Positions 3,491 through 58,410 of a stretch of DNA of 64,000 bases are shown piece after piece. The notes beneath the pieces are model-generated. The model saw nothing but the letters and a program-made list of their open reading frames with translations. It did no database searches and had not been told where the DNA came from. The DNA is taken from NCBI GenBank assembly GCA_025786725.1, contig JAHLTZ010000007.1, positions 124,001-188,000 of the forward strand. Direction: 5' to 3'. A program made the translations under genes and the position numbers. Numbering within the stretch: the stretch's first letter is position 1; each line of letters opens with the position of its first letter. Source of the stretch: Syncephalis fuscata S228. Lineage: Eukaryota; Fungi; Zoopagomycota.

Positions 3491-4059
3491 GTAGATCAAA
3501 ATAGCAAACTATTTAAAAAACATGTAGACTTTTTAAAAAATGGTTTATTAGATTTGCACTTTGCATTTCAAACTCTGTATTTAATTAGGAAATGTGTTTT
3601 AAATTATTTCATTATTTATGAAAAGTTAAGATTATTAGTATAATATTCACGCTATTTAAATTCATCTATAATCAGTAAATGATTTTAAATCTAATGTTAA
3701 CATTGCGCCAAGAATTTAACGTCTTTTCTAGTATATTTATGTACCGATATCATTATAATACTAGCAAATTGAATATAAAAGATTTAAGTCATCATACTCA
3801 TGTTATAAGAAAACATCATGTTAAGCAGTAATGCAAAAACATTTTAAATGTCACCAATATTTTTAGTCTCACTGCACTTAATAACATTAATAACTGCTTT
3901 GTCTTTGGCTATTTTCAGTCTATTCACAAATGTTTTACACACTTCCGTTATTTTGCCCGAAACTTTTTAACTGGCCGAAGAAATAGCGGTAGGGAATTTT
4001 ATAACTTCCAAGTACATGTTATTGACGACATTATATGATTTTATGGACATAGAATTTAA

Positions 4060-9184: not shown

Positions 9185-9849
9185 TGTTACTAATTTACCT
9201 GTATAACTATGGTGTAAATTGCGCTATTTACTAAATGTGGTAAATAACTTAATTAGCAATAATTACATCACGTGATTGTTCCCATTTCTGGTAATCGTCA
9301 GGGTCCTTACAAAGATAGTCGTGCTTTCAGCCAAGATACGACGATCATACTATTATAATTGCTTCTAATTCGTAGCAGGAAACACAGCGCCTATAAATAT
9401 TTGCGATCCACGGCCCCATATTACTTATTAAAGTAACACTGGCCCCATATCGCTTGAAGAAGAAATTGAACAGACAAGCCGTTCAAGTTCTTCCTTCGCA
9501 GTATTCAAGACCATTTACTATAAAATGGCAACTATGTTTCTTAATCTTAATAAACATTATCTTATCTTGGTTTTAAATTCTTTTTATTTTATTTGAATTC
9601 TGAACCTTTTGATCATTTCAGTCTTGCAGTGATTGCTAGACTGAACTGATCCTTTTATCTAAAGCTAACAATATTCTAGTCATTTATTCTACTTCTGTAG
9701 AAATTATTAATTAAAGGTTGATAATCTTTATTAATAAAAACAATTAAGTAAGTCTTATATAACACTAATTACTAACATTATAGGTCACTCAAGACCAAGC
9801 ATAATATTAGTAATCCGTTTATTATTCTACTCTTAGTGGAATAGTAACA
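9185..9849 (+). repeat. 5' LTR
   Basis: Direct repeat of 11255-11919 with TG...CA termini; TATAAATA at ~9392. Confidence 0.95.
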
Positions 9850-9851
9850 TT

Positions 9852-9869
9852 TGGCGAGCACACCAGGAC
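9852..9869 (+). promoter_or_regulatory. Primer binding site, resembling the complement of a tRNA-Arg 3' end
   Basis: TGGCGAGCACACCAGGAC begins 2 nt after the LTR end. The tRNA identity is inferred from similarity to eukaryotic tRNA-Arg(ACG) ends. Confidence 0.7.
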
Positions 9870-9931
9870 CTGGTAAAACAGGTCCACCGGCCCCGAAAGA
9901 TCTCCTGTGCAAATAAATAAAGCATTATGCT

Positions 9932-11263
9932 ATGGACGGCCCGGAAAACTCAAGAGTAAGAAGAACTCCATTATGGACAACAGGCTACACCACAGATACA
10001 AGATACAAGTACAATGATTATTATCTGCCCCATAAAACAATGGACTACCACGCAAAAATTGATGATAGCATTCCGTTATTCAACAGTTTAATTAAAGACG
10101 AAGATCCAATTCTGTGGCTGGAACTATTTGAGCAAGGTGCTAGACGGAATGGATGGCTAGAGTACGAAAAACTAGCGAAAGTATCATTGTATCTGGAAGG
10201 ACGTGCAGCGCTGTGGTTTTACGATGTAGAAGATTGGATCCAAACATGGAGAGAAAGCGATGATTTTGGTCATTATTCAACCAATTCATTCTATGGAAAA
10301 TTCTACGCAAAGTTTATTACTCCAAGTATAGAACGTCTTTGGCTAGAACAATTTCGATATTGCACATTTGTAAAGAATGATAGTGTTACAACATTTGCTA
10401 AACGGTTAAGCGAAATACACAAACGTTGTACGCTATATCTAAATGTTAGTGACGCTGAACTGATCGATCAATTTAAGCAAAATTTATCTGTTGTAATACG
10501 GGAAAAATTGTTAAGACATTTAGATTTTATGGAACGCGAATATCAAATTCGACAATACAGCTTTGATACAATCGTTAAAATCACTCAAAGAGTGGAGTTA
10601 AACCACATTAATGAATATGGTAGCCTACCATATGACTATTCATGTGAACAAATTGATCACGAGCCGTATCATTGCCATTACGCAAAATCAATTTATATGC
10701 GAGAATGGATATATACGTCTGTTCACCAAATTCGTCACAAAGTACAACCAAAGTCAACAGCGTGTCAGCCGACAGTACATATTGTCAACAAATGTCCGCC
10801 GAATCAAACTGCCTCAGACAAAGTAATTGATACTAAGCAACAAGAAGATATAGTTGAATATGAAGGCACTAATAATATCAATTCAAGTACTACGTCATAT
10901 GATTTGCAAGTTGATTCAACAATTGTCGATAAAATACAACAAAGGTTAATATCATGCAACAACTACATCGAGCTAGTAAACAACAATGTAGACAAGTTCG
11001 ATGAGATAAAATTGAATGCTACTAAATTGGTTCGGCTTAAACGCAATGCCGAGAATATAAATATAAATTATATATTGCATTCGAATAACTTGCCATTATT
11101 GTCAGCTTTCGACAACTACAATTATGGCATCTTTATGTTGGATAACAGAGGTAAAGGAAGCGCTAAACCATACGAAGAATTATCTTTGTCCAACTTAAAA
11201 CATTCTTTGTGTTATGGACAATGCGAGGACGCATTTTCGTGTGGTGCAGGGGAATGTTACTAA
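9932..11263 (+). CDS. Retrotransposon Gag (capsid) protein, 443 aa
   Basis: Intronless ORF with WLELFEQGARRNGW..EKLAKVSLYLEGRAALWF and DSVTTFAKRL, typical of Ty3/gypsy retrotrans_gag capsids; stop codon lies inside the 3' LTR. Confidence 0.88.
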   Translation: MDGPENSRVRRTPLWTTGYTTDTRYKYNDYYLPHKTMDYHAKIDDSIPLFNSLIKDEDPILWLELFEQGARRNGWLEYEKLAKVSLYLEGRAALWFYDVEDWIQTWRESDDFGHYSTNSFYGKFYAKFITPSIERLWLEQFRYCTFVKNDSVTTFAKRLSEIHKRCTLYLNVSDAELIDQFKQNLSVVIREKLLRHLDFMEREYQIRQYSFDTIVKITQRVELNHINEYGSLPYDYSCEQIDHEPYHCHYAKSIYMREWIYTSVHQIRHKVQPKSTACQPTVHIVNKCPPNQTASDKVIDTKQQEDIVEYEGTNNINSSTTSYDLQVDSTIVDKIQQRLISCNNYIELVNNNVDKFDEIKLNATKLVRLKRNAENININYILHSNNLPLLSAFDNYNYGIFMLDNRGKGSAKPYEELSLSNLKHSLCYGQCEDAFSCGAGECY

Positions 11264-11919
11264 TTTACCTGTATAACTATGGTGTAAATTGCGCTATTTA
11301 CTAAATGTGGTAAATAACTTAATTAGCAATAATTACATCACGTGATTGTTCCCATTTCTGGTAATCGTCAGGGTCCTTACAAAGATAGTCGTGCTTTCAG
11401 CCAAGATACGACGATCATACTATTATAATTGCTTCTAATTCGTAGCAGGAAACACAGCGCCTATAAATATTTGCGATCCACGGCCCCATATTACTTATTA
11501 AAGTAACACTGGCCCCATATCGCTTGAAGAAGAAATTGAACAGACAAGCCGTTCAAGTTCTTCCTTCGCAGTATTCAAGACCATTTACTATAAAATGGCA
11601 ACTATGTTTCTTAATCTTAATAAACATTATCTTATCTTGGTTTTAAATTCTTTTTATTTTATTTGAATTCTGAACCTTTTGATCATTTCAGTCTTGCAGT
11701 GATTGCTAGACTGAACTGATCCTTTTATCTAAAGCTAACAATATTCTAGTCATTTATTCTACTTCTGTAGAAATTATTAATTAAAGGTTGATAATCTTTA
11801 TTAATAAAAACAATTAAGTAAGTCTTATATAACACTAATTACTAACATTATAGGTCACTCAAGACCAAGCATAATATTAGTAATCCGTTTATTATTCTAC
11901 TCTTAGTGGAATAGTAACA
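11255..11919 (+). repeat. 3' LTR
   Basis: Direct repeat of 9185-9849. Confidence 0.95.
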
Positions 11920-14896: not shown

Positions 14897-16551
14897 TAAA
14901 TATTATTATCGGATATTACCGACGATATGTATAAATAGTACTAGTATTAAATCAAATAGTTGGAACTAATGGTTTGGTGCCTACAAAAAATAGACTCGTT
15001 AATAAAAACGTAAATAAAATAATTCGTAACGCTAGATAAGCGGATAAACAAGCAAGTCAATAGATGTGGTGGATGGAGTGGAAGAAGGGCGCACACCTGA
15101 TAATTGTGGAACGGCAGTGATGGCCTAGTGCGGGGAAGAAGAAAATGGAGATACCCATATAATAAGGGATATAAGCTATAAACAGCGCCAAACTAGTAAA
15201 TATATTCGAAACTACGAAAAGAAAAAGATGCTCATTATGGCCATAGACACGTGTTGCGTAGTTTTGAGCTCGGAATCTGTACCTCTACAACTTACCGTAT
15301 TTTTGTAACCAATCACTATAGGCATACGTCTCAAAAAGAACAAAACACGTTCGTGAAATGAATAGGCCTTACTTTGCTGTATAAAAGACATGGTGTGATG
15401 AGTGATTAATACTGGAAATAAAAATAACTAGTAGCAGAAGCAACTATATTACCACTTGTATTAAAACGTCAGCTTTTATTTTTTAAATTTAATGGATTTA
15501 ATTCTATGCTTCGACTTAAATATAATAATACTATGTCTAGTTTTGGTAATCATTAAATTATGATTGCATACTATAATTTGATCATTAGCCAGTGCATAAA
15601 CACTGTTTCTCATAACAGACTAATGTTCTTTTGCTTAATAATGACCATTATATTTATAACATTTCTATATATTTAATATTCGTATTCAAATTCATTCCAA
15701 TCTGCCATTCTTTTCCATTTTATATTCAGCCCGCTGTGTAATATTATATTGTATATTAATAATACTTTATTTAAAATAGTGCCCGCTTATCGCTAACTCT
15801 GTTTGTTATTTGCAAAATAAGATTTATTGTTTAAACAGAAGATTGTGTTCTATTCACATCGTATATAGATACAATTTTACTAATGTCCAGTCAACAAAAT
15901 TCACTATTTTTTCTATTATTATGATAATATATAATGCTAGCCGTTTATTCTAGCAAACAATTGAGCCAATCATTGTAGCGTTTGGGTTGGTTAGAGGCTA
16001 TGTAAATGCAAACATATTTTAGGATATTAAAATATAATTATAATAATTTTAGTATAACTAATCAATATTATAAATTATAACGATATTAGAGTGTAATTCA
16101 ATTGTTGATGTTTATCAATTCAACTTCAAAAATAGCTAAATTATTATATAAATATTATTTCCACCTGGCTAGATTACGGCGTAACATCGCTTTTCAAAAA
16201 AGTCTACACGTTTTTAACTAATTTGTTTCAACCGTTTTATGGCTTCCTTGAATACTTTATGTTTTAGCTAATACTGTTGATATTTATAAACAAAATAGCT
16301 TAATTGGCGTAATACGCTGTTTACATAGCTACTTGGTTTAATGTATCACTATATCCACAATACATTTCTTAAATCTCTACCAATATTAGCGTCTTCTTAT
16401 GTACTTTGTTAGGTTGTTTATCTTTGCCATTTTATAGGCTGGTATATTTGTGCTCACTACAGTTGTTAGCCTGATTCAAATGTGGTAACTTTTGCTGCTA
16501 TTACAATTAAAAAATGACATACTACATATTATTTATATATTTTGATTATCA

Positions 16552-17893
16552 GATCAGTTTTGCTGTTCATCAACACATAGATCGTTGGCAAATCGAGTAA
16601 CTACAATGAGCAGCACTTGCTTTGAAAACTTCAATTGAGCTGTTAAGCAATGACAATCAGTATAAAAAACTCATATTTATTGGATGATAAATAAAGAGCA
16701 ACACGCCTTTGCTTTGTTTAAACCGTGTCTCGCCAACTCGTTTATGTTTTGCGCGCTGTTTCTTTTAAAACAGTCAGCATGCAACTAGTGCAAGTCGAGA
16801 ATACGCAAATAGACTATTAAATGACAAAAAAAATCAAGTGTGAATATCAACCATGATGTCTCTTAATAAAGACTGCTTTAAAGTCTGTCTTAGCAGACAA
16901 TCACATTTATTATCCACAGTTGCATCATCACAATCTTCATTGTCTTCTTTCCTCGGTGTTTGTTTATAGTGCTAGCCGATGGACTTTGTTGCAATCGTTA
17001 TACAACAACCACAAAGGCCTTACAGTCATGGTAGTATAGATATGTTTTAGTAATGGAGATGCGCATGTCTGTTATGAAAATGAGACGTCCAGTGAAGCCA
17101 TCAGTGCCATGATTCAATAGGTAGATCAATACGAGATTTATACACTTTTATAAAACAGCTGTAATGATGCAAAAATCAGTAATGATATGAGCAGTTAGTT
17201 TATTTGGTTTTAGTTTTATCAAGGTAAAATTTATAAATAGACAACAAAGAAATTGGCTATCCAATACTAAGCTTTATATCAGTGTAACCAAATTGACTAA
17301 TTAAGAAGTAATTGTAACATAACTGATGAATTTATTGCATTGTTTTTATGTCACACAAACTGAAGGCTATGTTCGCAGAAGCTGATTTTTAGTTTACAAT
17401 TTGAATTTAGGCTACGGCACAGGTATAAATTAAATGCCAAATATCTCGTTAGTTTTGCTCTCTTTATAACATCCAAGCATCTTTCGCATTCTGTATCGAA
17501 CATCTTTAGCAACATAACTAGCATTTTAGCATTAAACATTTTTAAACTTGTTGCATATTTGTGATTATAAAGTATATCAAAATTCATTTCAACATGCACT
17601 TCACCAAGACAGCCGTTTATACCGTCGTCCTACTGGTCATCGGACTGGTCGCAGTGACTGCCCGACCAGCGCCAATATACAAAGACGTCGATAACACCTA
17701 TGGCGGCACTGAATCAGCAGATCATGGTGCTTACCCATCGAGTTATTATGGCGACGTTTCTGCCAATCCTTACAGTAACGAAGTAGGTGGCGTTTCTGCT
17801 GATCCTTACCAATCCATTAAATACTCTGATGAAGAGGGCCAGAAAAAAGAAATAAATAACGCTCAATATAGACGACTAGTTCGTCGGCAAGCT
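16552..17893. repeat. Partner of the inverted duplication 2112-3490
   Basis: Reverse-complement identity that ends exactly at the RRQA codons. Confidence 0.95.
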
Positions 17894-18130: not shown

Positions 18131-18339
18131 CAGGGTTTTTGCATAAATGTAATAAAAATCATTAAATTCTTAACGCAATGTTAAATTTGAATTTAAAACT
18201 ATTTGTTAACTAAATATATTAAATATTGTAGGTATTACATTGCTAATCTCAATGTTTTAAAAATGACGATAAATACAAAATACATTCTCTAATTAATTAA
18301 ACAGTTTGGAATTCAAGATGAAAGTTAATAAACCACTTT

Positions 18340-19298
18340 TTATACTTTAACCGTCACCGCCGGGTACACTCAACAAAAGAAAGAATTGAAGAGAGAATTC
18401 AGCCAATATCAGATGACTTTGTTGTGTAAGAGTTCACTCATAAGTCTTTGGGTAGTTTAAAAAGGAAATTTGTGTAAACATATACTATAAGCCAGTGTTT
18501 ATTATTAGCTCCATGTTATTAAATTGAATGAAAATAAAAGCTTTTGACCATTGGATCATTTATACAGCTTATTATTCACAACATCAAAATAACTACATTT
18601 GTAAAATAATCAATGCATTTTATAATTCAATAGGTGCAAGCAGTTACACAGGATAGTGCATTTTTATCTAGCAATAGCTTATTGTATTAAATCTATTGCA
18701 TTATATTCAAATATCCTGTTTAGATTGTATTTAAATATTAGTTATTGAAGTTTTTTAGGGAAAAAGAAAACAAAACACAGCAATGTGATTGCCGTTGTTT
18801 TCAAAAGACAAAACAACTTTATCGTGGTATTGTTAAACCTGTCATTACACAATACAAATCGACACGCTTGTTGATATCACATACGTGACGATTAGTGCAT
18901 GCGCATTATTTGTTTGTGCCAAACAAGTTATAACAACAGGCCTTTTTGAATTCTATTTAGTATTACTCTATTTTTATATGTATGTTCCAAAAAACCATCT
19001 GGACTTGTTCCATTGATTCACGTTGTTTTTAACAATACAATCAATACAATAAACTTCTGTTGATACTACAACATAATCATAGGTTTAAATAGAGCACAGA
19101 ATATGCATAAATAGTCAGCGATATTACCATCACACTCTAATCTTCAGCAAATAAGCATTTTCACCTACTCTATATCAATTCTATTTCACTATTCATTTTA
19201 CTTTTCTGTTTTAACAAACAATATCATCATGCGACTTTCTATTGCCATCTTCTGCGTTCTTTTCGTGGCTTTTGTGGCTAATACAAGCATAGTAGATG
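18340..19298. repeat. ~960-bp direct duplication (promoter + signal-peptide coding sequence of the micro-exon gene), partner 29913-30874
   Basis: Near-identical from ttatactttaaccgtcaccgccggg to ...gcatagtagatg. Confidence 0.95.
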
Positions 19299-20181
19299 TT
19301 AGTCCAACTCTAACCCGGCGTGGTACGTTACAATTACAATATATTTTATAGAGCTATGCTTATAGTATATAATTAACCAATGATGTTGTTAGGCGGTAAG
19401 TCGCAACTATGTAGCGCTGGTTATATGTTAACTGGCAATTCAATTAAACATTGCTTTTTATTAAACTAAAACCAATAGAAAGTAAGTACCATACTTCATT
19501 AGTTACATATACACTAATTTCATATTGCCTCTATGTATCAATAATTTACTATTACCAGAACGTAAGTAGTATTGCATATTGGCTGTTTATCCTTTAATCA
19601 CAAACTATGTATCGTATTCATTAACAATTTAATGTTAAAAGGCTGTAAGTAATACTGTATATTAGTTGACCACGTATTAAATAAATACTATATGATATTT
19701 GTATTAAAAACTTAATATAATAGGCCGTAAGTTGTATTGTATATTAATTAGCTACGCACTAATTGCATATTGTACACTTTGTGCATTAATAATTTAATAT
19801 GGATAGCTTGTAATGGTATTGCATACTGATTAACTATGTGCTAATTACAATTTGTTTATTATGCATATTGGCAAATTAACATTGATAGATAGTAAGTGAT
19901 ATTGCATGTATATTATTCGTGTCAATAATTTAATGTTAATAGTTGGTAAGTTGTATTATATGTCAACTAGCTATGCACTAATATATATTATGTATTTTGT
20001 TTATTGGCAAATTGATTTGATAGATTGTAAGTGTTTTACATGGAAATTAATTATTTACTAAATATATACTCACTATTTGCATCAAAAACTTAATATTAAT
20101 AGGTTGTAAGTAGAATTACATATTATTGTTTTATGAGCTAATTATATATTATTTGCTATGTATATATATATAAACATAGAA
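19229..20181 (+). CDS. Micro-exon gene A: secreted peptide precursor MRLSIAIFCVLFVAFVANTSIVDVSPTLTRRGEKRCPYIDC* (41 aa)
   Basis: Exon 1 is 19229-19322 (phase 1). Ten 3-nt exons follow: 19393 GCG, 19479 AAA, 19559 AAC, 19642 GCT, 19724 GCC, 19807 CTT, 19889 ATA, 19943 TTG, 20024 ATT, 20103 GTT, each AG|NNN|GTAA. The terminal exon starts at 20180 (AATAA). Joined, they read open to TAA and give KR + CxxxxC. Confidence 0.85.
19323..20179 (+). repeat. Tandem array of ~80-nt related introns separating 3-nt exons
   Basis: Recurrent unit gtaagt.gtattgcatatt....ctaat......aatttaatattaatag with a period of mostly 77-86 nt (one of 54). Confidence 0.85.
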
Positions 20182-21900
20182 TAACTGATACACGCAAGAC
20201 ATTAACATTAGTAGCGTAATTAGACTGCAGCCTAATTTATTTTAAATACATGTTTGAAAAGCAAAAACCACTGACACCTATGCCATTTAGACCATCCAAA
20301 TATTAAATTTTAGCCAACTCTCTGGTTTATTCATCTATGTAGACTTGTTTGAGTAAACACAAGTTTGTTTTAATTGTATTTAGCAATCTGTTACATTTTG
20401 TTCAGTGTTTATTTACATTCAATGATTAGCAGTGATTAATTAACTAAGTAAATTAACAGCAAATTTATACAAATATACTTTGTTTCAAATATATATACAC
20501 GGCTGTTCCAATATTGATATTATAATAGCAATATTTTATTTGAATAGTGTAACAATATCCACTAACAATGTAATCAGCTGTACTAATTTGAAAAATGCAA
20601 TACAGCCAAAGAGCTATAATATTGGTAGAAGTATAGTAATACTTCATTATTCGCTTTGAATCTATGTATATTGTTATAAAACAGGCGTTATAGTATTGAA
20701 TATTGCACAATTAGCACTTTACTCTCTGAAATAGTACCGTTTAGTTAAAACTATTACCAAATTATGTGTTAAACGAATTAAGTGCGTACACTAATAAATA
20801 ATCATGCTAGTGACAATTAATGGATACCATGAAAGAGGAAACTGATTGAAGATAAAGCAATATAATTAAGAACGAACAATGAATGCATTGGAATAAGCAA
20901 ATGATGTAAAATAGCTGACACTTTGAATCAAATAGTGTAATTAAATCTTTTTATTATGATCTAATATGAGCATCACTAATAAATGGTCCAATGTGGATTG
21001 CACACTTGAATATAAGTTTTTATTCTTTTTATATATAGTAAATATGCAATTTTAAGCCGATATTTTAGAAAAGCGATTTTAACGTACTTAGGTGGTAAAA
21101 TGCAATGGCATATAAATTAGAAATATTAGTCATTTAACTAATAGGGCGTTACTAATACTATGTATAACTTTACGTAAAATAAAGTAAATTGTCTGAAATT
21201 ATGCACAAGTGTGCACATAACATACAGGTAGCCATTGGCAAAGTATACCGCAATTGTACTGGTTAATAGTGTAATAATTGTGCTAATGCGCTTATAAATG
21301 TGTAAAAATAGCAGTTTTGTACTGTTTATAACCTATATAAGTAAACTACAGCAAAATAATTAACAGATTCAAGTTCTCCATGCTAAACTGTACATTTGGT
21401 ATGAAATATGAAATAATGATTTTGCAACAAAATGTTAATCAAAATGCTATTTACGTGTTATTAACAAAAGTAACTAAGCTTCATAATTTCAAGAAATTTA
21501 ATACTAATAGTTAAATTTGGCTTGAAGTAGATTTAAAGCGTTTTACAGTATTAAAACATGCATAATAAGTTAGTATGTATAAATACCGACGCATATTGAT
21601 GGGGTATGCCATACATTTACATATAACAGATTTTCATTAAACTGCATTTTTGGTTACTTTCTTTTTGCAAAAATCATTATTTCATATTTCATACCAAATG
21701 TACAGCTTACCATGGAAAACTTGAATCTGTTAATTATTTTGCTGTAGTTTACTTATATAGGTTACAAACAGCACAAAACTGCTATTTTTACACATTTATT
21801 AGCGCATTAGCACAATTATTACACTATTAACCAGTACAATTGCGGTATACTTTGCCAATGGCTACCTGTATGTTATGTGCGCACTTGTGCATAATATCAT
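20130..21900. repeat. ~1.8-kb direct duplication (last intron/terminal exon of micro-exon gene A, 3' flank and foldback), partner ~56650-58410
   Basis: Near-identical from ctaattatat..atttgctatgtatatatatataaacatagaataac onward; the same spurious ORF MCNIQYYN... occurs in both copies. Confidence 0.93.
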
Positions 21901-22870: not shown

Positions 22871-23774
22871 GTCTAAAAGTATTAAGAAAATGAGATAAAA
22901 TAAGTAAATAAAGAAAATAAAATAAAGAGGCGCTGGACCTGTTTGTTTACTGACTGGATGAGTGGGCAGCTCAAAGTGAGATAGCAATCACTGTAAAAGG
23001 GACATGGAACAATCAAGACTGAAAGGCAGATGACGCCCACTAAATCACTATCCTCTGCTTTTCAAAATCTAATAGTTCAATGACATGGTCGCTACCTATT
23101 AATAAAATGACGCAATCTTAAATATAGTGACTGTGCATTGTGATAAACCAGCAACTTTGATAAAATCCTCTCTTTCCTCCCTTCCTATTTAGTGACAGAA
23201 TTCATAAAGATCTGCCGCAAACCTTTTTCTTTACCAAGTCGCGTTTCGTCACGCACAACACTTTTTCTTTCTGTTTCTCGTCTCATCCACCTTTACACAC
23301 TATCACTTCTATCACCTTACCTCATCCTCATTCCCGTTAGTCTCTTCAATTCCGCTAGTATGTTTGGTACTGTTGGCTTCTTTCTATCAATTCTGCATAA
23401 TGTTTCTCAAAGGGCTTAAACAACTCCTTGGAAAAGCGCCTCGTATCGTCCAAGGTAAGCTCATCCCAACAGCAATAGACACATATTCTCTCCGCCTTAT
23501 ACACTTTCTATCTGCTCTGCGCCTATTGTGACATCTGCAAGGCGTCAAAGAGAGAATTGTGAGCCGTCTCGTGTCTCACATGCCTCTCTACTTGTCATTG
23601 CTGTCAGACTGGCACATCATGAGCCTAAGTGGCTCTTGTCTCTCTCTTTTCTCACCTTCCTCGTCTTTTCTCGTTTGCCCACACGTACCTCGCTGTTTAC
23701 TCACTCGTTTTTTTCACTGGCCCCGCCTGACGGGGATTAGCTGCTCCAATCGTCACAACTGCTCTAGCGAATAC

Positions 23775-26643
23775 AGTATCAGCCGTTTGGGTCAAGCTTC
23801 TGCGTCAGCCCTCGGACGGTGGCGCTCTCAAAAACTGGGCAGTCCCAGTAAGATCCGTGACCTTAGACAAGACGTTGATATCGATGACCTCCGCAAAACA
23901 CTTATCACCGATATTGCTTTCCAAGGCAAGCTCGATGGCGTAGCCTCGTCCGACCTAAAAGTCTACAACAACGACGAAGATGCTACCAACCAGAGAGAGC
24001 CTATTGAAGAAGATACTCCACTCTCAGAGCTTATTGAGGCCGGGAAGGGCGGTAGGAAGAAGACTGCCCTGATCGTTGTAGCACCACCCAAGCCTGGTAA
24101 GTAGTTTTGCTTTAAAGACCAGCAGTCAATACGACTCCTTCCTCTGCCGTTTGCTTTTGCTTTACGTCTATGTAATACTAATATCTAATTATTCTTTCCA
24201 TTACTCCGATATATCCATGTGCCTATCTCCTCTTGTGCCTCTACTTCGCTTCCTGGCCATCTTTCAGATCAATCGCGTCCTGGTAAGTGCAATTAGACCT
24301 TTTCTAAATACTCATTGTGTAACCTTGTGTTAATTACTTAATGTTTTTTATCGCCCTTTTTAATCATGTAGCAACAACCATCCAACTCATCCAGCAAACG
24401 TCTGTTCCGACTGATCGCATCGAAAAGGAATTGGAAATATTTTTCAAGGCGTCAACCATCAGCTCACCCGTCCTATCGATCCAAAAGATGTTGAAGCCTC
24501 GCAAAGAAGTATACTAGGACCCTTTTACAAGAGAAATCTACCATACTACACAACAGCAACGGATATAAGTCTAGTGATGTTGGGACTTGAATTGGGCAAG
24601 CATGCGAGAGACAGTAATGGCGAGACTCTTTATAAATTGTCAAGAAAGACATCGGCGGTTATAATGATCATCGCGTAGTGGCCATGGTTGCCCCATCCGG
24701 TTCAGGAAAGACTGCAACAGTCATTGACCTTGCGAGCAAGCACTTTGTCATTTATTGTGTCTGTTGTATACCGAATTTGATTTCTCCGGGTTTTAATGAT
24801 CCAAACTTTATCACGCTTGCAAAGGATGTCGAGAGTATGTACCGGACCATCGTTAACAGAAATCAGGGGAGTTTGCGCGATCCGCTGGACATTGATTCCG
24901 AAGTGAAAGCACTAGCGGAAGAACGCGTCAATCTCGAATTCCTTGCACGAATGCTCTTCCTTCAGTATCTCCTAAAAAACAATCCTGATTTGGAGCCGCA
25001 GCAGTTCTTCCGTGAGCAGATCACTGGAGGCGCCTTGACTATTGGCAGGCTAGTCCGCAAGCTACAGGATTACGACAACGGCACAATCCAAGACATGCTC
25101 AATGAAGTCCAAGCTAAGCTTCAGCTCCTTTTATCTTCCAAAGGACTTGGACTGGTGATTGCTCTGGATGAAGCTCAAATTGCGGCGACTAAGATCTTAT
25201 CGGTAAGCTCATCTCACCGGCCGCTTTGGATAGTAACAAAAATACACTCTTCGACGACAAGAACCAGATACAATTCCGATACCGCCGCGGCTTTCTCACA
25301 CCTTTATCAAATGCTCTGAGCACTATGCAGGCGACGCTGGTGATACTGGGCACATCACTCTCATTGCAGGATGCCGAACATGTGTATACAGCTATCGCCA
25401 AAAAAACCAATTTTTCGAGGATAACAAACTTTCCGAGCTTCAATGAAGACGATGTGAGCAGGCTATTTTTGGATCTAATCGACATGTCAGGCTGTGAAAT
25501 CCCGCTTGCTAAACGCCGCATGCTAACAGGACGATCTCGATTTTCCGTTGACGTCATCAACCATCTCGCCGCGTCTTGCGCTTTTAAAGGCTCTAAACAA
25601 GCTATTCTGGATCACGCTATTGACAAGTCGATTAAGCATACGATAAATGGTCTTCGGGCCAAGATACGCGCCATTCTTGCCAACGATCAAGCAGGTGGGA
25701 TAGCTCGGCTTCTCTCTCGAATGGTATTGGCCTATCATCTTCACGTGGCAAAATATCTTTCTCGGGCAAGGACCAGTCCGACTTTGTGGACAAAGCTCTG
25801 TGCAAACTACGACCACACTCTGATGGCATTCACTTGATCATGGACGAGCCAATAGTTGTTGAGGCAGTGCAGGAAGAGCTAAAGGCTTTGGGCAAGGATC
25901 CGGTGTTCTCGGAGTACATGGATCAATTTAACCGAATTATCGCCAACTTTGGCATCGCTTCAACTTCAAAGGGAGATGCGTTGGAGCCACTTGTCCGCCG
26001 ATCACTTCAACGCTTCAATGGCTACCGTCTTGTTGACCTTCCTTTCCTTCAAGGCGTCACATTGCCCACCTGGTGCAGCAATTTCCAGCTCCAAATTGAT
26101 GAGATTAAAACAGCCAATGGATTTGGATACACTGGCAATGGCGTTCGTGCAGATCTCGCCTTCCTCACCGAATGTCCTCCGAACAAGATGCTTATTGCCA
26201 ATAATGGCACACGTCCGGATGGAGTCTGGTTTTTCTCTGACAAACGTTACGCCGGCTCTCTTGCGATCAAGCTCTACAGCAACCGTCTGAAGCAGTCTAC
26301 CCACTACTCAAACAAAACTTCCAGCAATATTCGGAATTGTTTTTTGAAACAGGACGGTATCAACGTGAACCCATCCTTGACAGGCGTTCGACGTGACTTT
26401 AAGGCTTCAGGTACTCCGTCCAACCTTAGAGGCATCCTTCGTATTCATCTCGAGTTCCCTGGCGTCGAGGGCGGTAATCCAGTTACCCATATCAAAAAGA
26501 ACCCTGCGACTGGTATCGAGGATGTAATGGTGTATATAAACCTTTTGAACCTGGACGATTTTTTTTTCGAGGGTATTGCAGAAAACAAGGACGATATGGC
26601 TAAATTAAAAAAGCTAATCAAATTTGTCTCCAGCTCAAAGTAA
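23775..26643 (+). CDS. Crinkler (CRN)-like protein: ubiquitin-like header + P-loop NTPase + PD-(D/E)xK REase domain; several frameshifts (errors or pseudogene); start approximate
   Basis: Header VWVKLL...DIDDLRK...LDGVASSDLKVY...IEEDTPL...ALIVVAP; introns 24097-24267 and 24283-24371; Walker A APSGSGKT; Walker B LVIALDEAQ; GDALEPLV...RPDGVWF...SLAIKLY nuclease motif across ORFs 24678, 25226 and 25786. Confidence 0.8.
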
Positions 26644-28760: not shown

Positions 28761-29912
28761 GTTTTATTAATAAATAAATTTAATAAATTTAATAAATAAT
28801 GTATGGCAAAGACTGCATATGAATAATTTGTAAGCATTTTGGGTTTGTCTAAAGAATTGTTTCAAAAGTGTATATGGCGACTCGAGGGCAAGAGGAATAA
28901 GGCGTCAGTCATTAATGGCCTTTAGAGTCCATAAGAATATGGTGTGGAGGAACGGAGACCGTCCCGGAGATTGTAAGTAATACTGTTACCGAATTGTTTG
29001 GCAAATACAAATAAAAGTGTATTTCAAGAACACAGATTCAGTTGGTAGAACACTTATGTTAAAGTTAGTGAATTTATTGAGAGATTATGGTTCTTTATTA
29101 AATAAAGTAGTGTTTAGTATTTATATGAGTACTTGTTAGTTACCCTTTCATCCTTTATCATCGTCGTCCAAGCATATGCAGTCTCCTTTTCATCCATCAG
29201 ATTTACCTTAAATAGTTTTTATGCTTTGATACTTCTCTTCTATTTCTACTACCTTTCTCTTTTGGTCCTTGATGATATTGGTAATCTTTTTCAAATGAGC
29301 TTCATAAGTCTGCGAAGTTTACCGGACATACTGCTATATTTTAAATATTTTTCTAACTTTTTTCTATAGACTTCGTTTTGTTTTATTATAATACTTGGCA
29401 ACATGATATATAATCGTGAGTAATAGAGAGTGAGTGAGTGAGCAAACTGCCAACCAACGCTCTGTCCATAATATAGTTTCAGCATAAAACTAATGCTGCA
29501 GTACCAAGAATGTGCGAAACTGACACCCTTGTCCAAAGTTGACACTGTATGGCGGATATTGACTCATTAGAACAGGAAAAGAGCAAGAATGAAATATTCG
29601 GAACTTGATTCTTGAGCAATGGCAAATGTTCACTTTGGTTTTGTTGCAGTACGCATTATAGCATGTCGTGTATAACTTGATCAATAAAAGCTATTTTTTG
29701 TTAGACCAACTAATAGTATCAGTAGCTGAAAGCAGCGTTTTACTATTGAAAATGTCGCAAGACATCACATTACAAATAATGCTTATTGTAAGACAGGTCA
29801 TAAATGATTTTATAATATATCGCTTAAATATTGTCAATGGTATGTCATGTACAAGAATATGTTTAAATATATTGTATGTATAACTTTAGTAAATCATTCA
29901 TCTTTATAATTG

Positions 29913-30874
29913 TTATACTTTAACCGTCACCGCCGGGTACACTCAACAAAAGAAAGAATTGAAGAGAGAATTCAGTCAATATCAGATGACTTTGTTGTGT
30001 AAGAGTTCACTCATAAGTCTTTGGGTAGTTTAAAAAGGAAATTTGTGTAAACATATACTATAAGCTAGTGTTTATTATTAGCTCCATGTTATTAAATTGA
30101 ATGAAAATAAAAGCTTTTGACCATTGGATCATTTATACAGCTTATTATTCACAACATCAAAATAACTACATTTGTAAAATAATCGGTGCATTTTATAATT
30201 CAATAGGTGCAGGCAGTTACACAGGATAGTGCATTTTTATCTAGCAATAGCTTATTGTATTAAATCTATTGCATTATATTTAAATATCCTGTTTAGATTG
30301 TATTTAAATATTAGTTATTGAAGTTTTTTAGGGAAAAAGAAAACAAAGACACAGCAATGTGATTGCCGTTGTTTTCAAAAGACAAAACAACCTTTATCGT
30401 GGTATTGTTAAACCTGTCATTACACAATACAAATCGACACGCTTGTTGATATCACATACGTGACGATTAGTGCATGCGCATTATTTGTTTGTGCCAAACA
30501 AGTTATAACAACAGGCCTTTTTGAATTCTATTTTAGTATTACTCTATTTTTATATGTATGTTCCAAAAAACCATCTGGACTTGTTCCATTGATTCACGTT
30601 GTTTTTTAACAATACAATCAATACAATAAACATTCTGTTGATACTACAACATAATCATAGGTTTAAATAGAGCACAGAATATGCATAAATAGTCAGCGAT
30701 ATTACCATCACACTCTAATCTTCAGCAAATAAGCATTTCACCTACTCTATATCAATTCTATTTCACTATTCATTTTACTTTTCTGTTTTAACAAACAATA
30801 TCATCATGCGACTTTCTATTGCCATCTTCTGCGTTCTTTTCGTGGCTTTTGTGGCTAATAAAGCATAGTAGATG
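29913..30874. repeat. Partner of the direct duplication 18340-19298
   Basis: Near-identical sequence ending within the signal-peptide coding region. Confidence 0.95.
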
Positions 30875-32074
30875 CCATGTCAATAAAAACAGATAATGGT
30901 ATGTTGCAGTTATAATAAATATGTCATAGTGTTATATATGCCTAATGATGTTGTAAGGTGGTAAATCGTAGTTATGAGCTGTTGTTCCAATATTTACTGT
31001 ATATTTTCATACAAATAACAAGCGCAATAATCACATGTAACCAGTCAGTAAGTTTTGATTTACATAGCAAATCGTGACCTAATTAAGCACTGCTTGTTGA
31101 AGTAGATTTACCAAAATCATTATATAAATGTAGGCTTATTATAAAATAGTAAAACAAGCATTACATTTATAATACTAGTATACTGAATTAGCACTAATAG
31201 AAGGCAAGTATTATTGTATTTTAAATAGCATTTTAATTAAATATTGCTTCTATTTATCAAACTAAAGTAATAACTAGTAAGTAATATTATATAATGACTG
31301 GTTATGTGCTGATTATATGTCGTTTATGGTGTATGTCGCCAATTTAATGTTAATAGTTGGTGAGCAACATTGCATAGTAACTAACTATTTACTAATTATA
31401 TACCTACTTTGCGTATCAACAAATTGATATTAATAGCTTGTAAGTGGTATTATATATTAAGTGACTGTATTAATTAAACATTGTATATTATGTGTGTTAT
31501 CCACTTAATACTAATAGCTTGTAAGTGGCATTGCATATCAGTTGCATATGCACTAATTAAATGCTATAAGCTGCGTGTATTAACAACGTAATACAATAGA
31601 TTGTAAGTGATATTGTATATTAATCGTCTACGCACTAATTACGTGATTTACATGTTGCCTATTAATAATGTAATGTAAATAGTTAGTAAGTGATTCTGTA
31701 TGATGTCTGGCTATAGACCAATTACAAGACATTTACCGTGTTCCTCGCCAATCTGATGTTAACAGATTGTAAGTGGTATTATATAATAATCAGCCATATA
31801 CTAATTACATGTTGTTTGCTGGGTGTATTAGCAATTTAATATTAACAGTTTGTAAGTAGCATTTTATTTCCATTAGATATACATAAATCGCCTGCTATTT
31901 AATATCGATAGCTCGTAAATTGTATAGTATATTAATTGAATGTACATTAATTACATACTATGCATTATTTATATCAACAAATCAATACTAATAGGTTGTA
32001 AGTGCAACTATATCCTGGTGTATAATATAATGATTATATAGAATGCTCTGTATGCATCTATAAGTATAGTATAA
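30806..32074 (+). CDS. Micro-exon gene B: secreted peptide precursor MRLSIAIFCVLFVAFVAN(T)SIVDAMSIKTDNGVKVASYFNFSRL*; needs one base restored at ~30861
   Basis: Exon 1 is 30806-30898 (phase 1 once the base present in gene A is restored). Twelve 3-nt exons follow: 30958 GTG, 31045 TCA, 31201 AAG (GC donor), 31357 TTG, 31437 CTT, 31518 CTT, 31600 ATT, 31683 TTA, 31766 ATT, 31849 TTT, 31912 CTC, 31995 GTT. The terminal exon starts at 32070 (TATAA). Two further units (~31127, ~31274) lack the in-register AG. Confidence 0.78.
30899..32069 (+). repeat. Tandem array of ~80-nt related introns separating 3-nt exons
   Basis: Period mostly 80-83 nt; recurring aatag|NNN|gtaagtggtatt and a CTAAT branch-point motif. 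Confidence 0.85.
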
Positions 32075-33370
32075 GCAATGCTTTCAAGACATTAACGTTG
32101 TTGGAGTAATTGGGCCTCGAGTCTAACATATCCAGGCGTGCGTTCGACAAAAAGTAAGACCCTTTAGCAACCGTCGTCTGGTCTATTTATATACCAAGTT
32201 CTACCTAATACTATTTTTATCTGGCTTTTAATTGATGGCGTTATTGCATTAATAGCAAGTCTGTACTTGGATGGATCTATTCAGTTATGCAACCATGCAA
32301 TAATAAATACACAATTTTATTTTGGTTATAGATAATTAAGCTATTATAGCTATGTTCATGTATTACTTTTATCTAACGATTAGCAAACATTAGTTAAACA
32401 TACTAAAAGCATGTCTGTACAAATTGTAAAATCGTTACATGTTTTTTTGTACACCAAATATAACAAATATTTTAATAACGTATAAAATGATAAAAATTTA
32501 ATTACCTACAATATGTTATTTTTAAAAGTGTATCACTTTTACAAAGTGTTTATTTCTATTTTATCTGAGGTTTGCTTTTGTCCTTAATAGGTCTTTTAGT
32601 AGTTATTACGCTATGTAATACTGGTTTAAATTAATATATACATTATTAAATAGTAATTATTTTGTAGACTGCTTTCATTTTATCGAACTGTCACTACTAA
32701 TATGCAAACTGTAGGTAATCCAGCTAATCTTTTCTCTTTGGTCAATAGGTCAAATACTGTGGTGATCTTTCGTGGCTGGATGGTGCATTCTAATATAAAT
32801 ACACTATTATGCATGCTGTATAATTCATTAAAGTAGTTATTCCGACCTTTTTTATACAATAGAGACGGTTAATGTGCACATTCGTGTAAACTGTTTATTT
32901 ATTCATAAGTTTTGTAATACATTGTTTATCTCGTTTTATATTATTCTGTCCTATACTGGCTATTCTTTGCTTAAAATTATTATCAATTCGATGTTATCTG
33001 CCTTTGTTGTAAATCTCGGTTCAGCTCATCCATTGAGCCATACGCACCGTAACTGCGCGACGATCATATCAAACATGCCCCCGTTAATCCACAAATCCAT
33101 GACAACACACTGTCGCAGTTTCAAATGGTCTAACAGCCTGCCAAGATTATTGCTTCCGACACTTCAGATGCTGGTAATTTAGTATATTTCCGTCGAGTGC
33201 TATTACAGAGTAGCACCCTTTTCATTCCAAACACTTTGTCTTTCACTTGTGAATCCCCAACTTCTTGCCGATTAATAATCGGCTGTTTTCTTTTAACTGG
33301 CTAACCACGTAGTACTATCGGTTTATTATCTTAGTTCAGCGTCCCTTAATAACTGCCCTTTTTGATAACT

Positions 33371-35389: not shown

Positions 35390-38300
35390 GTAGTAGTAGT
35401 CAGTATTATAGAATATGATTATGTATACCGCTTATAGCTACTTACCAAATGCTGTCGGTTCTCCTTCCCATGTTACAAGCCAGTTTGGCCTTGATCGTCG
35501 ACCATTTTTGTTAACAAAGAAGGCAAACTCGTCGTAACATAGTAAAAAGTCACCATTGCGGATACGGAAGATGGCAATTGGCCGAGCACTTTCCCGTCTA
35601 AGGACAAAGTTTAATGCTTCATCTGCTGGATCCAGTAGACCAAGTGTATTAAGTGTTTCTAAATCAACTACTTCAAATCCTTTGTTGCAACCAACACAAA
35701 GTTTTGTTTTAAGGAAATGAATCGATGATGATTCAGTAGGAATATAGAATTCCTAAAGTAAATTAATAGTAATAAATAATGATTAGTATAATTTATATAT
35801 ATATATATATAATTAGCGTATTATTAAATGGCATCATACTTACTCGATAAACCTTCATCGTTTCATTATTGCGTAAAATCATACCAAGAGACTTTTTCTT
35901 GTTATTCATAGCAGATACTGGTTCCAGTGTGTTAATAGTCGAGTAAAGAGCGGCCGACTTGACTACACAGACCAATGTACGATTCATGCAAACGCCAACC
36001 TTGAAGAATGATACGTGTGATTTAATTTTGCGGCCACTACGTTTTGTCGACGATGATTCAAGCGGCATAAGACAGTCCATTGGATAGGAAGTAAGAGTGC
36101 GGCTTTTATCTATTTGTATATCAATCGTTTATTAGCTTCTTTATTTACCATTGGTGCTTAACTACTTACCGTGCAATATTAAAACCATATTATAATCCTC
36201 AAGAATCTCAATTTTATGTACTTTCTCCAGATCCAAAGTTTTGGCTAATGTATCAGGCTGTGCCTCCATGCCTACATATACACCATCGTCGGTACCTATT
36301 ACAAGTTTACGACCTTGATCTAATTGCATAATATGTTGATTAGTATTGAAACAGTATTGCTGGTAATTGCTAATACTCACTGAACACTGCTGAGCAATTG
36401 ACACGTGATGTCTTGTGGAAATGACGGTCAGAGAGAGTGATAATGCTAAAGATTTGCCGCGATTGAACTACTAGCTCACGCTGTGCCTCAATCTTCTCGC
36501 GCCATTGCCATCGTTCTGCCTGAGATGATGCATACAATACAATTTCCATACCGTTACGGCCAAGGTGTGTAAGTGTAATGGGGAAGCCAGCCTTGGTAGC
36601 TTCATTCGTACGAGTAGATGAACTAGTTGAAGTAGGGGCCGGTGTATAGGCCGACGATAATGAGCCGCCATTAATGCCTTTAGTGCCAGAAAAGATGGAA
36701 CTTGTACGACGAGCTGTTTGGCGTAATGCTGGCTCATCAGCAATGGTCAATGAAAGCATTTCCAAGGGAATGGGCTGTTTATGTACTTTGTAGCCACCGC
36801 CATCCTTTGCTTTGCGTCGTTTGGCCAACAATAAACAATGGTCGAATAGGAATACCGTCACTTCAACCTGGTCAACATTGGCACGCTTCTTCAAAGTGCC
36901 TTCACGAACCAATTGTCGTTCTGGATTAAGTAGCGCTAGCTTTTGTAGATCCGATTGATTACAAAGCAATTCGTCGTTAAGTTTCGTTAAACGAATACGC
37001 GTATCAGCTCGTCCAGCCTCTGAGTTGATATTTTTCAATAATACACGGATTTTTTCTACTGCTAGTATTAGATCCTCTCTATCGGGATGTCCTTCTGGCG
37101 ATGCCTTTATTACTGCTTCAAGCAATAGTGGATAGCGTGCCAATCGCGTCGTTGGTCGACCAAGGAAACTTTGAATAGGTAGCTTGCGTGATTCAGGCAT
37201 GCGTTCACGCTGCTCAAGCCAGCGTGGTAATTCGCGATATTTCTGAATAGCTGTATCAAGATGGTGCTTTGCGTATGGCTGATGCGCACCATAGGATACA
37301 AACGGATCAAAGTTGTCCACATGAGCAAGGAATATATCGCCAACACGTTCCACGACTGCCTTTTCTTCTTGTCGTTTCAACAAAGCTTGGGCAAGCGGTG
37401 CACTAATTTGACGAATAACCGAAACGTTATGAAATACCTGAACAATGAAATCATCCAGTTCTACCGGGTCCCAAATGATATTAGCATAACGAAGCGGTTC
37501 CATGTAAAGACGTTCAAGAATTTCTAAATCTTCTACAAAGTCTTTTTCGGTATAAATAACCTCATAGATAATTTCCTGTCGTTTCTGTTCCTCCTTCGAC
37601 ACCGAATCTGAAATCTCCTTTGGTACCGATTCTATCCAAAGTGTTTGTTTCCGTTCACCACTTAAACCAGATCGGCTGCTAGTACGTTTCAAACCACTGG
37701 CTAGCTGCAGTTTAAGTCGTGCTTGTTGTTCAAGTCGTCGAGGACACGAAATACTGTAGCAAAGCGATTCGCGTGTACAGGTGGGCGAATAACAATCGGC
37801 CAATAGCGTGAAAACGCCATTTGGTAGTGCACTGGGTGCTAGATCCATTAATTCAGATTCTGTGGCCGCACTGGGCGAATGGCCACCATTATAGCTTCTG
37901 TGATCAGAGTCATTATCTTCGCCAATGTATGGTGATTGCAGTGTATCGAGGCCATCTCTATGTAAATCTGTTAGCATAGCATCTTCACGGAATTGGTATA
38001 TTTCATTTGGATTATCGCGCAATCGATGATCATAGGTTACATCGTGGAAGTAGCGCTGCGAATCAAGAGCACGGCCCAGCAACAAAGCAAGGTTACGATC
38101 ACCCGTTTTGATAATAAAGCAGAGCACATCAACAGCATCCCGACCGTTGAAGCTGGCCTTGTATTCAAGTGCATCTTTGTAGTGTGTCTGTAAAGTAATT
38201 CGCGAACGGAATGCATCGGCTACTTTAGACAATAATGCTGGGTAAACAATAGGCACCTTATGGGTGCTAGATGATGTAGAACCAAGCGGATTTACTCCAT

Positions 38301-39667
38301 TACCGTTGGAGAAAAAGCCGCCAGACAATGGACTAATGGCCCTTGGAACAGGCGACGTATTGAGTGAACTAAGCGAGTTGCAACGATAATCGCTAGCTGC
38401 GCGACTACGTACGGCAGCAGTAGGACCGGCCTGGCCCATACCTTTATGGCCCGTTAGTGATGGCGATGGAAAATCGCGTCCTCCATCGGATACGCTACGC
38501 GAATGTGTGGGACTACCGATATTTAAATGCATATCAAGGGGTGGTGCTAATAATTAATTAATAATTAAAGGTTAATTAAACTATTAAACTATTAAATATA
38601 TGTATCTACTACTTACGTTTCTGGATAGGTCCGCGATGATAAGTATTTTGTGGCTGATTTTCTGCCGCAATAGATGTACCAGTAACTGCAGTTGTTGATG
38701 CTGATCCGTTACTGGAATAATTACTATTATTATAATCTAAATTGCTCGTATAGTGTAGGAAGATATCAGCTGGTAATTCTAGTGGCGACTCCACTGTTAC
38801 AGTTTCTTTTCCAACAGTTAGCCGTTGGGTATCGATTGAACCATTAAAGTCTATAGATGGCTGATGATAGCCGTTATTGTTGAGCAAAGACTGGGTTGCT
38901 GACGTGGTCGTAGCGTGGTTTAATCCGTGCTGTGTAGGTAAATCCGCTGTAGTTATTTGTATTGGTACTTCGGGACTTGGATTCGTATTCAGCTTAACAG
39001 ATGAAAAGTCGGGTAAAGCGAAATCTTCCGATAACATAGACAACTCCACAGTAGGTGGTCGATCTGTCGATAATATAGTGTGTCGCGATGATGAAGAGTC
39101 TGCACGATGGTGTCTATTTAGTTCACCGCTATACCGTGAGTATAAATCAGCTCCGTTCATCGGAGTATTTCCTTGGCTAGCAGCAGCCTTGGCATGAAAG
39201 AAGCTGGGTGCTGCCTGAGACATGCTCTGTGAATCACTGGCGTTTTTACGATAGCCGGGCTGTGGTAATGGTCGGCCTACTCGTGAGCCATTCTTAGCTT
39301 GGCCAAAATCGGGTAATGAAGCACCGCTATGCTGTAGCCGAGAAGTCGACATATTTCGAGACGCTGAATAAGCGTGGCTTTGTTGAGATTGAATATTTGG
39401 ATCCGACGGACGTCTTCCGTGTACATCGCGATCGGCATGATATATGGATGACGACATGTGAAAGGCGGCGTTACCGTTGGTATTGCCAGTAATATTATTG
39501 TAATACGATTGAGATGAATAGCCGGCTGGATAACCTTGTTCGTTACTTGAAGACGAAGAGTTGGCCCGTAGACGATATTGAATATTATTATTATTATTTG
39601 AACTTTCAGATGCGCCGTTTGAACGCGATAAATTGTGCGATCCTTCCGATGACTGGTGGCCAGACAT
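35132..39667 (-). CDS. Rho1 guanine nucleotide exchange factor Rom1/Rom2/Rgf1-type (DEP-DH-PH-CNH)
   Basis: VYPALLSKVA, DRNLALLLGRALD (DEP), CYSPTC...CYSISCPRR, RQEIIYEVIYTEKDFV...RPTTRLARYPLLL (DH), FLFDH (PH), and CNH exons (LVIGTDDGVY, FYIPTESSSIHFLKTKLCVGC). Confidence 0.95.
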
Positions 39668-56128: not shown

Positions 56129-56649
56129 AAAAGTTTAATAACCTGCAAGACACCGTAAATAGCGTTGTTTAGTAGTGTAATAAAATAATAATAATAATAA
56201 TAAAATTTACTAATAATAATAGCAACTGATGTCACTATTTAATAAAAATTGACTCGATATAAATTGCGCGTTTGATTCGATACAGTTTCTTTTTTGTTCA
56301 CAGTGTCATCTGGCAACATTAAATACGCGAAATTTAATTGTATAATATTACATTAGTGTTGAAAAAGCATCAGTAAGTTTTCGTATGAAAACGAGATTAA
56401 TTAATTAAAAGCAACTTGCATTCTATTTGCATCAGATCTGTTGAATACTATGTACAATGTTTTCTGCTTTTTCTTACTCTATTTCAGTTTAATATTACCA
56501 TTATAGCCACATCAGCATTAGCTGATTCTTTGTTAAAATCAGTTCAGTTTGGTATAATCACAACAACTTGATTTTGTTTACTGAATCTATTATAAAGCTA
56601 AATTGGATAATTTTTTATTGTTTTTTCAATTAATATGTGCTTATATTAT

Positions 56650-58410
56650 GTTTATAACTAATTATATGTTATTTGCTATGTATATATATATAAACATAGA
56701 ATAACTGATACACGCAAGACATTAACATTAGTAGCGTAATTAGACTGCAGCCTAATTTATTTTAAATACATATTTGAAAAGCAAAAACCACTGACACCTA
56801 TGCCATTTAGACCATCCAAATATTAAATTTTAGCCAACTCTCTGGTTTATTCATCTATGTAGACTTGTTTGAGTAAACACAAGTTTGTTTTAATTGTATT
56901 TAGCAATCTGTTACATTTTGTTCAGTGTTTATTTACATTCAATGATCAGCAGTGATTAATAACTAAGTAAATTAACAGCAAATTTATACAAATATACTTT
57001 GTTTCAAATATATATACACGGCTGTTCCAATATTGATATTAAAATAGCAATATTTTACTTGAATAGTGTAACAATATCCACTAACAATGTAATCAGCTGT
57101 ACTAATTTGAAAAATGCCGTACAGCCAAAGAGCTATAATATTGGTAGAAGTATAGTAATACTTCATTATTCGCTTTGAATCTATGTATATTGTTATAAAA
57201 CAGGAGTTATAGTATTGAATATTGCACAATTATTACGTCTACAATGCTGAGAATAGTGCTGCTTAGTTAAAACTATTATCAAACTATGTGTTAAACGAAT
57301 TGAGTGCGTACACTAATTAATAATCATGCTAGTGACAATTAATGATACCATGAAAGAGGAAACTGATTGAAGATAAAGCAATATAATTAAGAACAACAAT
57401 GAATGCATTGGAATAAGCAAATGATGTAAAATAGCTGACACTTTGAATCAAATAGTGTAATTAAATCTTTTTATTATGATCTAATATGAGCATCACTGAC
57501 TAAATGGTCCAATGTGGATTGCACACTTGAATATAAGTTTTTATTCTTTTTATATATAGTAAATATGCAATTTTAAGCCATATTTTAGAAAAGCGATTTT
57601 AACGTACTTAGGTGTTAAAATGCAATGGCATATAATTAGAAATATTAGTCATTTAACTAATAGGGCGTTACTAATACTATGTATAACTTTACGTATAATA
57701 AAGTAAATTGTCTGATACTTCGCATAAGTGTGTGTATAACATACAGGTAGCCATTGGCAAAGTATACCGCAATTGTACTGGGTAATAGTGTAATAATTGT
57801 GCTAATGCGCTTATAAATGTGTAAAAATAGCAGTTTTGTACTGTTTGTAACCTATATAAGTAAACTACAGCAAAATAATTAACAGATTCAAGTTTCCATG
57901 CTAAACTGTACATTTGGTATGAAATATGAAATAATGATTTTGCAACAAAATGTTAATCAAAATGCTATTTACGTGTTATTAACAAAAGTAACTAAACTTC
58001 ATAATTTCAAGAATTTAATACTAATAGTTAAATTTGACTTGAAGTAGATTTAAAGCGTTTTACAGTACTAAAACATGCATAATAAGTTAGTATGTTAAAT
58101 ACGACGCATAGTGGTGGATGTGTCATACATTTACATATAACAGATTTTCATAAACTGCATTTTGGTTACTTTCTTTTGCAAAAATTAGTATTCTAAATCT
58201 TGTACCAAGCATTACAGCTTAGCATGGAGAACTTGAATCTGTTAATTATTTTGCTGTAGTTTACTTATATAGGTTACAAACAGTACAAAACTGCTATTTT
58301 TACACATTTATTAGCGCATTAGCACAATTATTACACTATTAACCAGTACAATTGCGGTATACTTTGCCAATGGCTACCTGTATGTTATGTGCGCACTTGT
58401 GCATAATGTC
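56650..58410. repeat. Partner of the duplication 20130-21900 (orphan terminal exon and 3' flank of micro-exon gene A)
   Basis: Near-identical sequence; no AG|NNN|GT array was seen upstream. Confidence 0.93.

Follow-up and report, generated by a model that had tools for sequence, protein, structure and literature searches.

A candidate family of secreted-peptide genes with predicted one-codon exons in Syncephalis fuscata

Introduction

In Tuber melanosporum, alternative splicing of codon-sized microexons in the nank (NACHT-ANK) genes is reported to diversify the sensor domain of large intracellular NLRs (PMC4986451, PMC10197012). The micro-exon genes (MEGs) of schistosomes, which are restricted to flatworms, have exons of 3-81 nt, mostly of 15 nt, and introns of 0.1-5 kb (PMC4350168; bioRxiv 10.1101/2023.06.21.545858). 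The Syncephalis fuscata genes described here resemble MEGs in that they belong to a parasite, pair a conserved signal peptide with a fast-evolving mature part, use exons that are a multiple of three, and were overlooked by automatic annotation; they differ in that every internal exon is 3 nt, introns measure 51-84 nt, and exon plus intron is tandemly repeated. Further, the predicted 3-nt exons do not make up most of the coding region (36 of about 132 nt in gene B and 78 of about 177 nt in its paralogue, gene D), predominating in the mature part only, and the lineage is zoopagalean fungal, not platyhelminth; no homology is claimed. With the nank genes they share a fungal origin and the use of multiple 3-bp exons for diversification; unlike these, their 3-nt exons would code, in phase 1, for nearly all of the mature portion of a small secreted peptide, and no NACHT or ankyrin domain ORF lies in or beside gene B and its paralogue gene A. 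The S. fuscata genes work like MEGs and have the exon size of nank genes, yet lack defining features of both.

Conotoxins and fungal KEX2-processed peptides combine a constant signal or pro region with a variable mature region; these families are not known to use one-codon exons. Unlike KEX2 repeat proteins, the S. fuscata genes encode one mature peptide without repeats, and searches for sequence similarity to conserved-prepro peptide families found none. A literature search of incomplete coverage turned up no description of fungal genes for secreted peptides built from one-codon exons. S. fuscata parasitises moulds of the Mucorales. It is a zoopagomycotan fungus (PMC7482067). Here, we analyse a 64,000-nt stretch of its genome ("the window"; contig JAHLTZ010000007.1 of assembly GCA_025786725.1, offset 124,000), in which gene B lies, together with related loci elsewhere.

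Results

Anatomy of gene B

Gene B comprises a first exon, an array of tandem units of about 82 nt, each made up of a 3-nt exon and its intron, and a terminal exon. Its features, in window coordinates, are as follows:

29910-30874, + strand: promoter, 5' UTR and signal-coding block, which matches 18337-19298 of gene A at 98.5% identity
30806-30898, + strand: exon 1 (signal peptide plus short linker), 93 nt as assembled, one base fewer than in gene A
30860-30861, + strand: one-base break in exon 1, which is shorter than in A, C and P0124
30958-30960, + strand: 3-nt exon 1
31045-31047, + strand: 3-nt exon 2
31127-31129, + strand: dead unit, acceptor AG missing, within a 153-nt intron
31201-31203, + strand: 3-nt exon 3, GC donor in a strong context, also present in pseudogene C
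31274-31276, + strand: dead unit, acceptor AA not AG, in the same state in pseudogene C
31357-31997, + strand: 3-nt exons 4-12, starting at 31357, 31437, 31518, 31600, 31683, 31766, 31849, 31912 and 31995
32070-32074, + strand: coding part of the terminal exon with the stop (32072-32074), homologous in A, C and D
32075-32330, + strand: 3' UTR region, sharing 55-63% identity with A, C, D and the intronless P0124

The first-pass annotation had proposed twelve usable 3-nt exons, and these were borne out by AG and donor sites at the starts given above; with the two dead units, gene B thus has 14 units. A weak alternative 3-nt exon (31278-31280) adjoins the second dead unit. Introns of exons 4-12 span 60-80 nt, and units are 55-70% alike, both within this stretch and within and between genes. 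Within 30899-32069 we counted 11 AG-NNN-GTRAR sites, against a mean of 0.32 (maximum 4) in 5000 shuffles, and zero such sites for exon sizes of 0-2 or 4-8 nt. A three-unit pattern matched six times in the window and never in 100 shuffles.

The joined triplets were translated solely as a check on frame, with the break in exon 1 kept unrepaired and represented by X. Phase 1 yielded a 13-residue tail after the signal exon, the same residues as originally proposed. An alternative AG five bases upstream of the terminal exon leaves the last residue unchanged and also reaches the stop. It had been argued that a second array reading open to a stop strongly supports the model; this did not hold up, as open reading is expected by chance at 0.33-0.50 per gene (random orders or random triplets), and at 0.38-0.50 for the second array, so that a second open array is by itself not strong support. 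On the other sequence evidence, the gene B model is real as first described, its splicing being predicted. The encoded product is a single mature peptide without repeats, and no dibasic site follows its signal.

Genes A, B and D are all absent from the NCBI gene calls. Neither exon 1 nor P0124 nor the ORFs next to them matched a Pfam family, and Pfam and ORF checks found no NACHT or ankyrin domain ORF in or beside genes A and B. These two genes lie in about 18 kb of lineage-specific DNA between the IPK and TRP genes, which in S. plumigaleata are 1.2 kb apart with no array in the syntenic interval. Elsewhere in the window are a RhoGEF gene (36370-38532), whose product is 100% identical to a known S. 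fuscata protein, and a gene spread over several overlapping ORFs at 23580-26643, Crinkler-like in appearance but with no Pfam match. An inverted 96% duplicate of a 178-aa secreted-looking protein (2112-3503 and 16538-17893; the first copy has a doubtful intron) was also seen, as was a recently active LTR-type element at 9185-11919, with identical 665-nt direct repeats and a 443-aa ORF without Pfam match. The protein of this element is identical on three contigs, with a close copy on a fourth.

Members of the family

Collecting relatives with the signal exon, as the first-pass annotation had advised, was productive: the gene A exon 1 query led to P0124, an intronless peptide that is annotated and shares the prepro region; gene C lies 3 kb from it. 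Gene D was located by a whole-unit HMM, independently of its splice signals. The relatives of gene B are:

19229-20184 of the window, + strand: gene A, a paralogue whose 94-nt signal/pro exon is intact and has a dibasic site at its end
56643-58628 of the window, + strand: truncated copy (92%) of the last intron, terminal exon and downstream DNA of gene A, with no array or signal exon
L005 3955-2950 and L006 4440-3440, - strand: gene C, a decayed pseudogene
L005 7065-7325: P0124, included on the basis of a prepro region and 3' UTR in common with the one-codon-exon genes
L127 6935-3050 (S. fuscata contig 11), - strand: gene D, beside a copy of the window LTR element

Gene A has ten 3-nt exons (19393-20105) and a terminal exon from 20180; hydropathy over residues 1-19 of its exon 1 is 2.2-3.2, which by this measure predicts a signal peptide. 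The first exons of A and D (94 and 97 nt) both end in phase 1, and a dibasic pro-site is present in A, D and P0124. Gene C has 11 units, lacks a start codon, and its splice sites are mostly broken; alignment of B with C makes whole-unit gain or loss visible. Gene D is the largest member (29 units, 26 usable) and encodes a Cys-patterned product, the Cys count being marginal (p=0.049). It carries recent internal duplications up to 94% identical and two unrelated intron insertions of about 830 and 400 nt, and may be decaying. No arrays were found near two other copies of the LTR element.

P0124 and P0125 (S. fuscata BDF19DRAFT_447209 and 422180) are 65% identical to the one-codon-exon genes in the prepro region, and their 5' region and 3' UTR are homologous to those of these genes. 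They are intronless, have a Cys-rich mature part of about 55 residues, and represent either the ancestral form or an intron-lost copy. The gene calls made for P0124 (85 aa, partial, and 115 aa) seem wrong; its ORF finishes at 86 codons. Searches with exon 1 found no spliced product, those with exon 1 and its natural read-through into intron 1 as a protein query gave no candidate, and exact exon 1 DNA had no match in the metagenomes.

The proposal that A and B share a signal exon was upheld, as was the homology of their terminal exons and 3' UTRs; the stop falls at the equivalent place in A, B, C and D. With 10, 14, 11 and 29 units, respectively, a shared phase and stop, and exons more variable than introns, these genes are in keeping with the earlier suggestion of a hypervariable peptide family whose length changes one residue at a time, a reading that the sequences support with splicing as predicted.

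Splice sites and divergence of exons and introns

The loci differ in exon number and triplets while splice signals persist, as had been noted. Both splice sites are intact in 22 of 24 units of A and B and in 26 of 29 of D, compared with 3 of 11 in pseudogene C (Fisher p=2.6e-4 for A+B against C; p=3.7e-5 for A+B+D, 48/53, against C); units are not independent, so these p-values, like those for divergence, are indicative. Only the splice-site columns are near-invariant among units. In length, in donor consensus and in having a branch-like motif some 36 nt downstream of the donor, the array introns are like ordinary Syncephalis introns (56-93 nt). A second conserved branch-like motif lies about 10 nt before each acceptor (T at -12, A at -10).

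We compared the exon columns beside the splice sites with intron columns, as a proxy for divergence of the mature part relative to the signal; the comparison uses no codon model and its units are not independent. Triplets diverged more than introns, a contrast that the first-pass annotation had recommended examining. In A+B, identity at the three exon columns was 0.23, 0.49 and 0.28, against 0.57 for intron columns; the middle base, which is the wobble position in phase 1, is alone as conserved as the intron. The values in D were 0.31, 0.26 and 0.25 against 0.68, and among its 24 close unit pairs the flanks are 83% and the exons 31% identical. Exon bases less conserved than intron bases are the pattern that diversifying selection on the encoded residues would give.

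A one-base break in gene B exon 1

Exon 1 of gene B was said to lack one base relative to gene A; we see the same between 30860 and 30861, and C and P0124 also have the longer state. As assembled, the signal ORF of gene B stops after 20 codons. Identity with gene A over the shared 967-nt block ends at the predicted signal cleavage site: the signals are identical, and the remainder of exon 1 is 47% identical. The block contains seven one-base gaps, five of them on the side of A, and seven substitutions, an excess of one-base gaps over an older duplicate (p=3.7e-4). Elsewhere, the near-identical ends of contigs 24 (L005) and 12 (L006) differ by 34 gaps in 5.3 kb, six of which fall inside a CorA gene whose two copies are called at 265 and 243 aa; these one-base differences are either haplotypes or assembly errors. 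Nearby conserved single-copy genes are frameshift-free and the 665-nt LTR pair is 100% identical, so assembly errors are not everywhere.

Exon order and the C-terminus

Whichever exons are skipped, A (1024 subsets) and B (4096 subsets, giving 2423 distinct tails) stay free of internal stops, the chance of such an order being 0.067 and 0.142, respectively. Gene D is not skip-proof, and a skip-proof exon order as a family rule is thereby ruled out.

Gene B ends in SRL, and its match to the PTS1 consensus had been flagged as possibly coincidental. Coincidence is, on the sequences, the most likely explanation, since the terminal exon largely dictates the last Leu, neither A nor D ends in SRL, and the N-terminal signal peptide of the family would direct the product to the ER.

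Similar arrays in metagenomes

The three-unit pattern matched at least 120 metagenome loci. Low-complexity DNA and probable CRISPR arrays (L009, L061) were removed as false matches, L084 and L123 (source unclear) were left out of the array statistics, and L115, labelled human-gut metagenome and possibly human, was excluded from the work. In the 52 filtered arrays, with 1061 triplets, phase 0 contains six stops where 58.7 (range 45-78) are expected; nine very AT-rich arrays have zero stops in two frames. A signal-peptide exon lies directly upstream of the array at L031, L057, L088, L098 and L106, two of these exons ending in a dibasic site, and other arrays occur in the context of NACHT/ANK, HET and kinase genes. 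Similarity of these arrays to Syncephalis units at the DNA level is weak at most and probably compositional, which suggests that the one-codon-exon layout has probably arisen more than once.

Among individual loci, L019, L008 and other WNGF, WNFZ and WNGA contigs are very AT-rich and carry 3-nt-exon arrays of about 95 nt upstream of kinase exons. At L042, L107, L028, L055 and L100, from other soil fungi, 3-nt-exon arrays lie beside HET, NACHT and ankyrin exons, like those of Tuber nank.

Discussion

Gene B is quite likely a member of an S. fuscata family encoding small secreted peptides through predicted one-codon-exon cassettes. In the mechanism that we propose, the conserved first exon codes for a signal peptide (with a dibasic pro-site in A and D), and is followed by tandem units of a short spliceosomal intron and a 3-nt exon, the terminal exon giving two bases and the stop. 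As the introns are in phase 1, each exon would supply the last two bases of a codon together with the first base of the codon that follows. The introns would be removed in turn, most likely by intron definition, leaving a prepeptide in which each exon spells one residue of the mature part. Unequal crossing-over or slippage could add or remove whole units, every such unit making the peptide one residue longer or shorter while the frame is kept; a splice-site mutation, such as a single acceptor loss, would silence one unit with the same effect. Selection would drive the three exon bases apart, and recent recombination or conversion could have placed one and the same promoter and signal block in front of the different arrays of A and B.

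Could the array instead be an unspliced, non-coding minisatellite that originated from a duplicated intron? Its units are indeed homologous over their full length, and some metagenome matches, such as the CRISPR-like ones, are plainly other repeats; but near-invariance is confined to the splice-site columns, which decay in C, conservation is lower in exon bases than in intron bases, and arrays always sit between a signal exon and a stop, all of which makes this very improbable. The break in exon 1 is less easily settled. A genuine base loss after a promoter-signal exchange between A and B would make gene B a very young pseudogene whose array has had no time to decay. That three relatives share the longer state, that neither the LTR pair nor single-copy genes in the vicinity show errors, that gene B already has two dead units, and that the family has at least one other pseudogene and one truncated copy all fit; one-base gaps are, however, as frequent as substitutions in the same block, with most on the side of A, and 12 of the 14 units are intact. 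The gap excess over an older duplicate and the six gaps inside the CorA gene speak for an assembly error. We therefore consider a very young pseudogene possible but the less favoured reading, and an assembly error in an intact gene B somewhat likelier. Whether the break is real or an error, the array was under selection until very recently. Were it real, an in-frame ATG at 30877, specific to B and directly behind the stop of the broken signal ORF, could start a 20-residue cytosolic peptide imported into peroxisomes by way of SRL, which fits PTS1. An out-of-frame ATG at 30872 comes first, position 30877 is no more than the residue that follows the predicted cleavage site, and SRL is absent from A and D, and we give this scenario hardly any credence.

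A further question is whether each gene yields one peptide or many. Skipping of 3-nt exons could generate a combinatorial peptide library, something that has been reported both in Tuber nank genes and in schistosome MEGs (PMC4986451, PMC10197012, PMC4350168), and A and B tolerate every skip. Gene D does not, the Cys spacing in A and D would suit a fixed product, and splice signals are mostly strong; we thus think a library doubtful, while skipping could add variants. As to what the peptides do, predicted secretion, rapid divergence, location and the lifestyle of the fungus point to a role at the interface with the host or competing fungi, a proposal on which we are evenly divided. Its main rival is self-signalling, with the peptides acting as pheromone-like, developmental or kin-recognition signals and not on the host. 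The prepro layout with a dibasic site in A, D, P0124 and the metagenome loci L031 and L088, the short, Cys-containing product of gene A, and the occurrence of other codon-exon arrays in recognition genes (NACHT/ANK, HET, kinase) speak for such signals. Paralogues that diverge within one genome, in element-rich, lineage-specific DNA that the syntenic locus of S. plumigaleata lacks, are better explained by an arms race, however, and gene B has no dibasic site, so that self-signalling appears rather unlikely.

Intron-plus-codon cassettes may, more broadly, be a general and repeatedly evolved fungal device for hypervariable secreted peptides, spelled one residue per exon and varied by unit gain or loss and exon skipping, with a large class missed by gene callers in Zoopagomycota and beyond; we offer this tentatively. 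The predicted genes extend codon-sized exons from the NLRs of Tuber to secreted peptides and, in other fungi, to HET and kinase genes, and they reveal secreted peptide genes that are invisible to standard annotation. Every variable codon has its own homologous intron adjacent as an internal neutral control, so selection can be measured residue by residue. If spliced as predicted, the arrays would be a natural substrate for studying the spliceosomal joining of 12-26 consecutive 3-nt exons, and their products would be candidate effectors of a mycoparasite that are open to testing.
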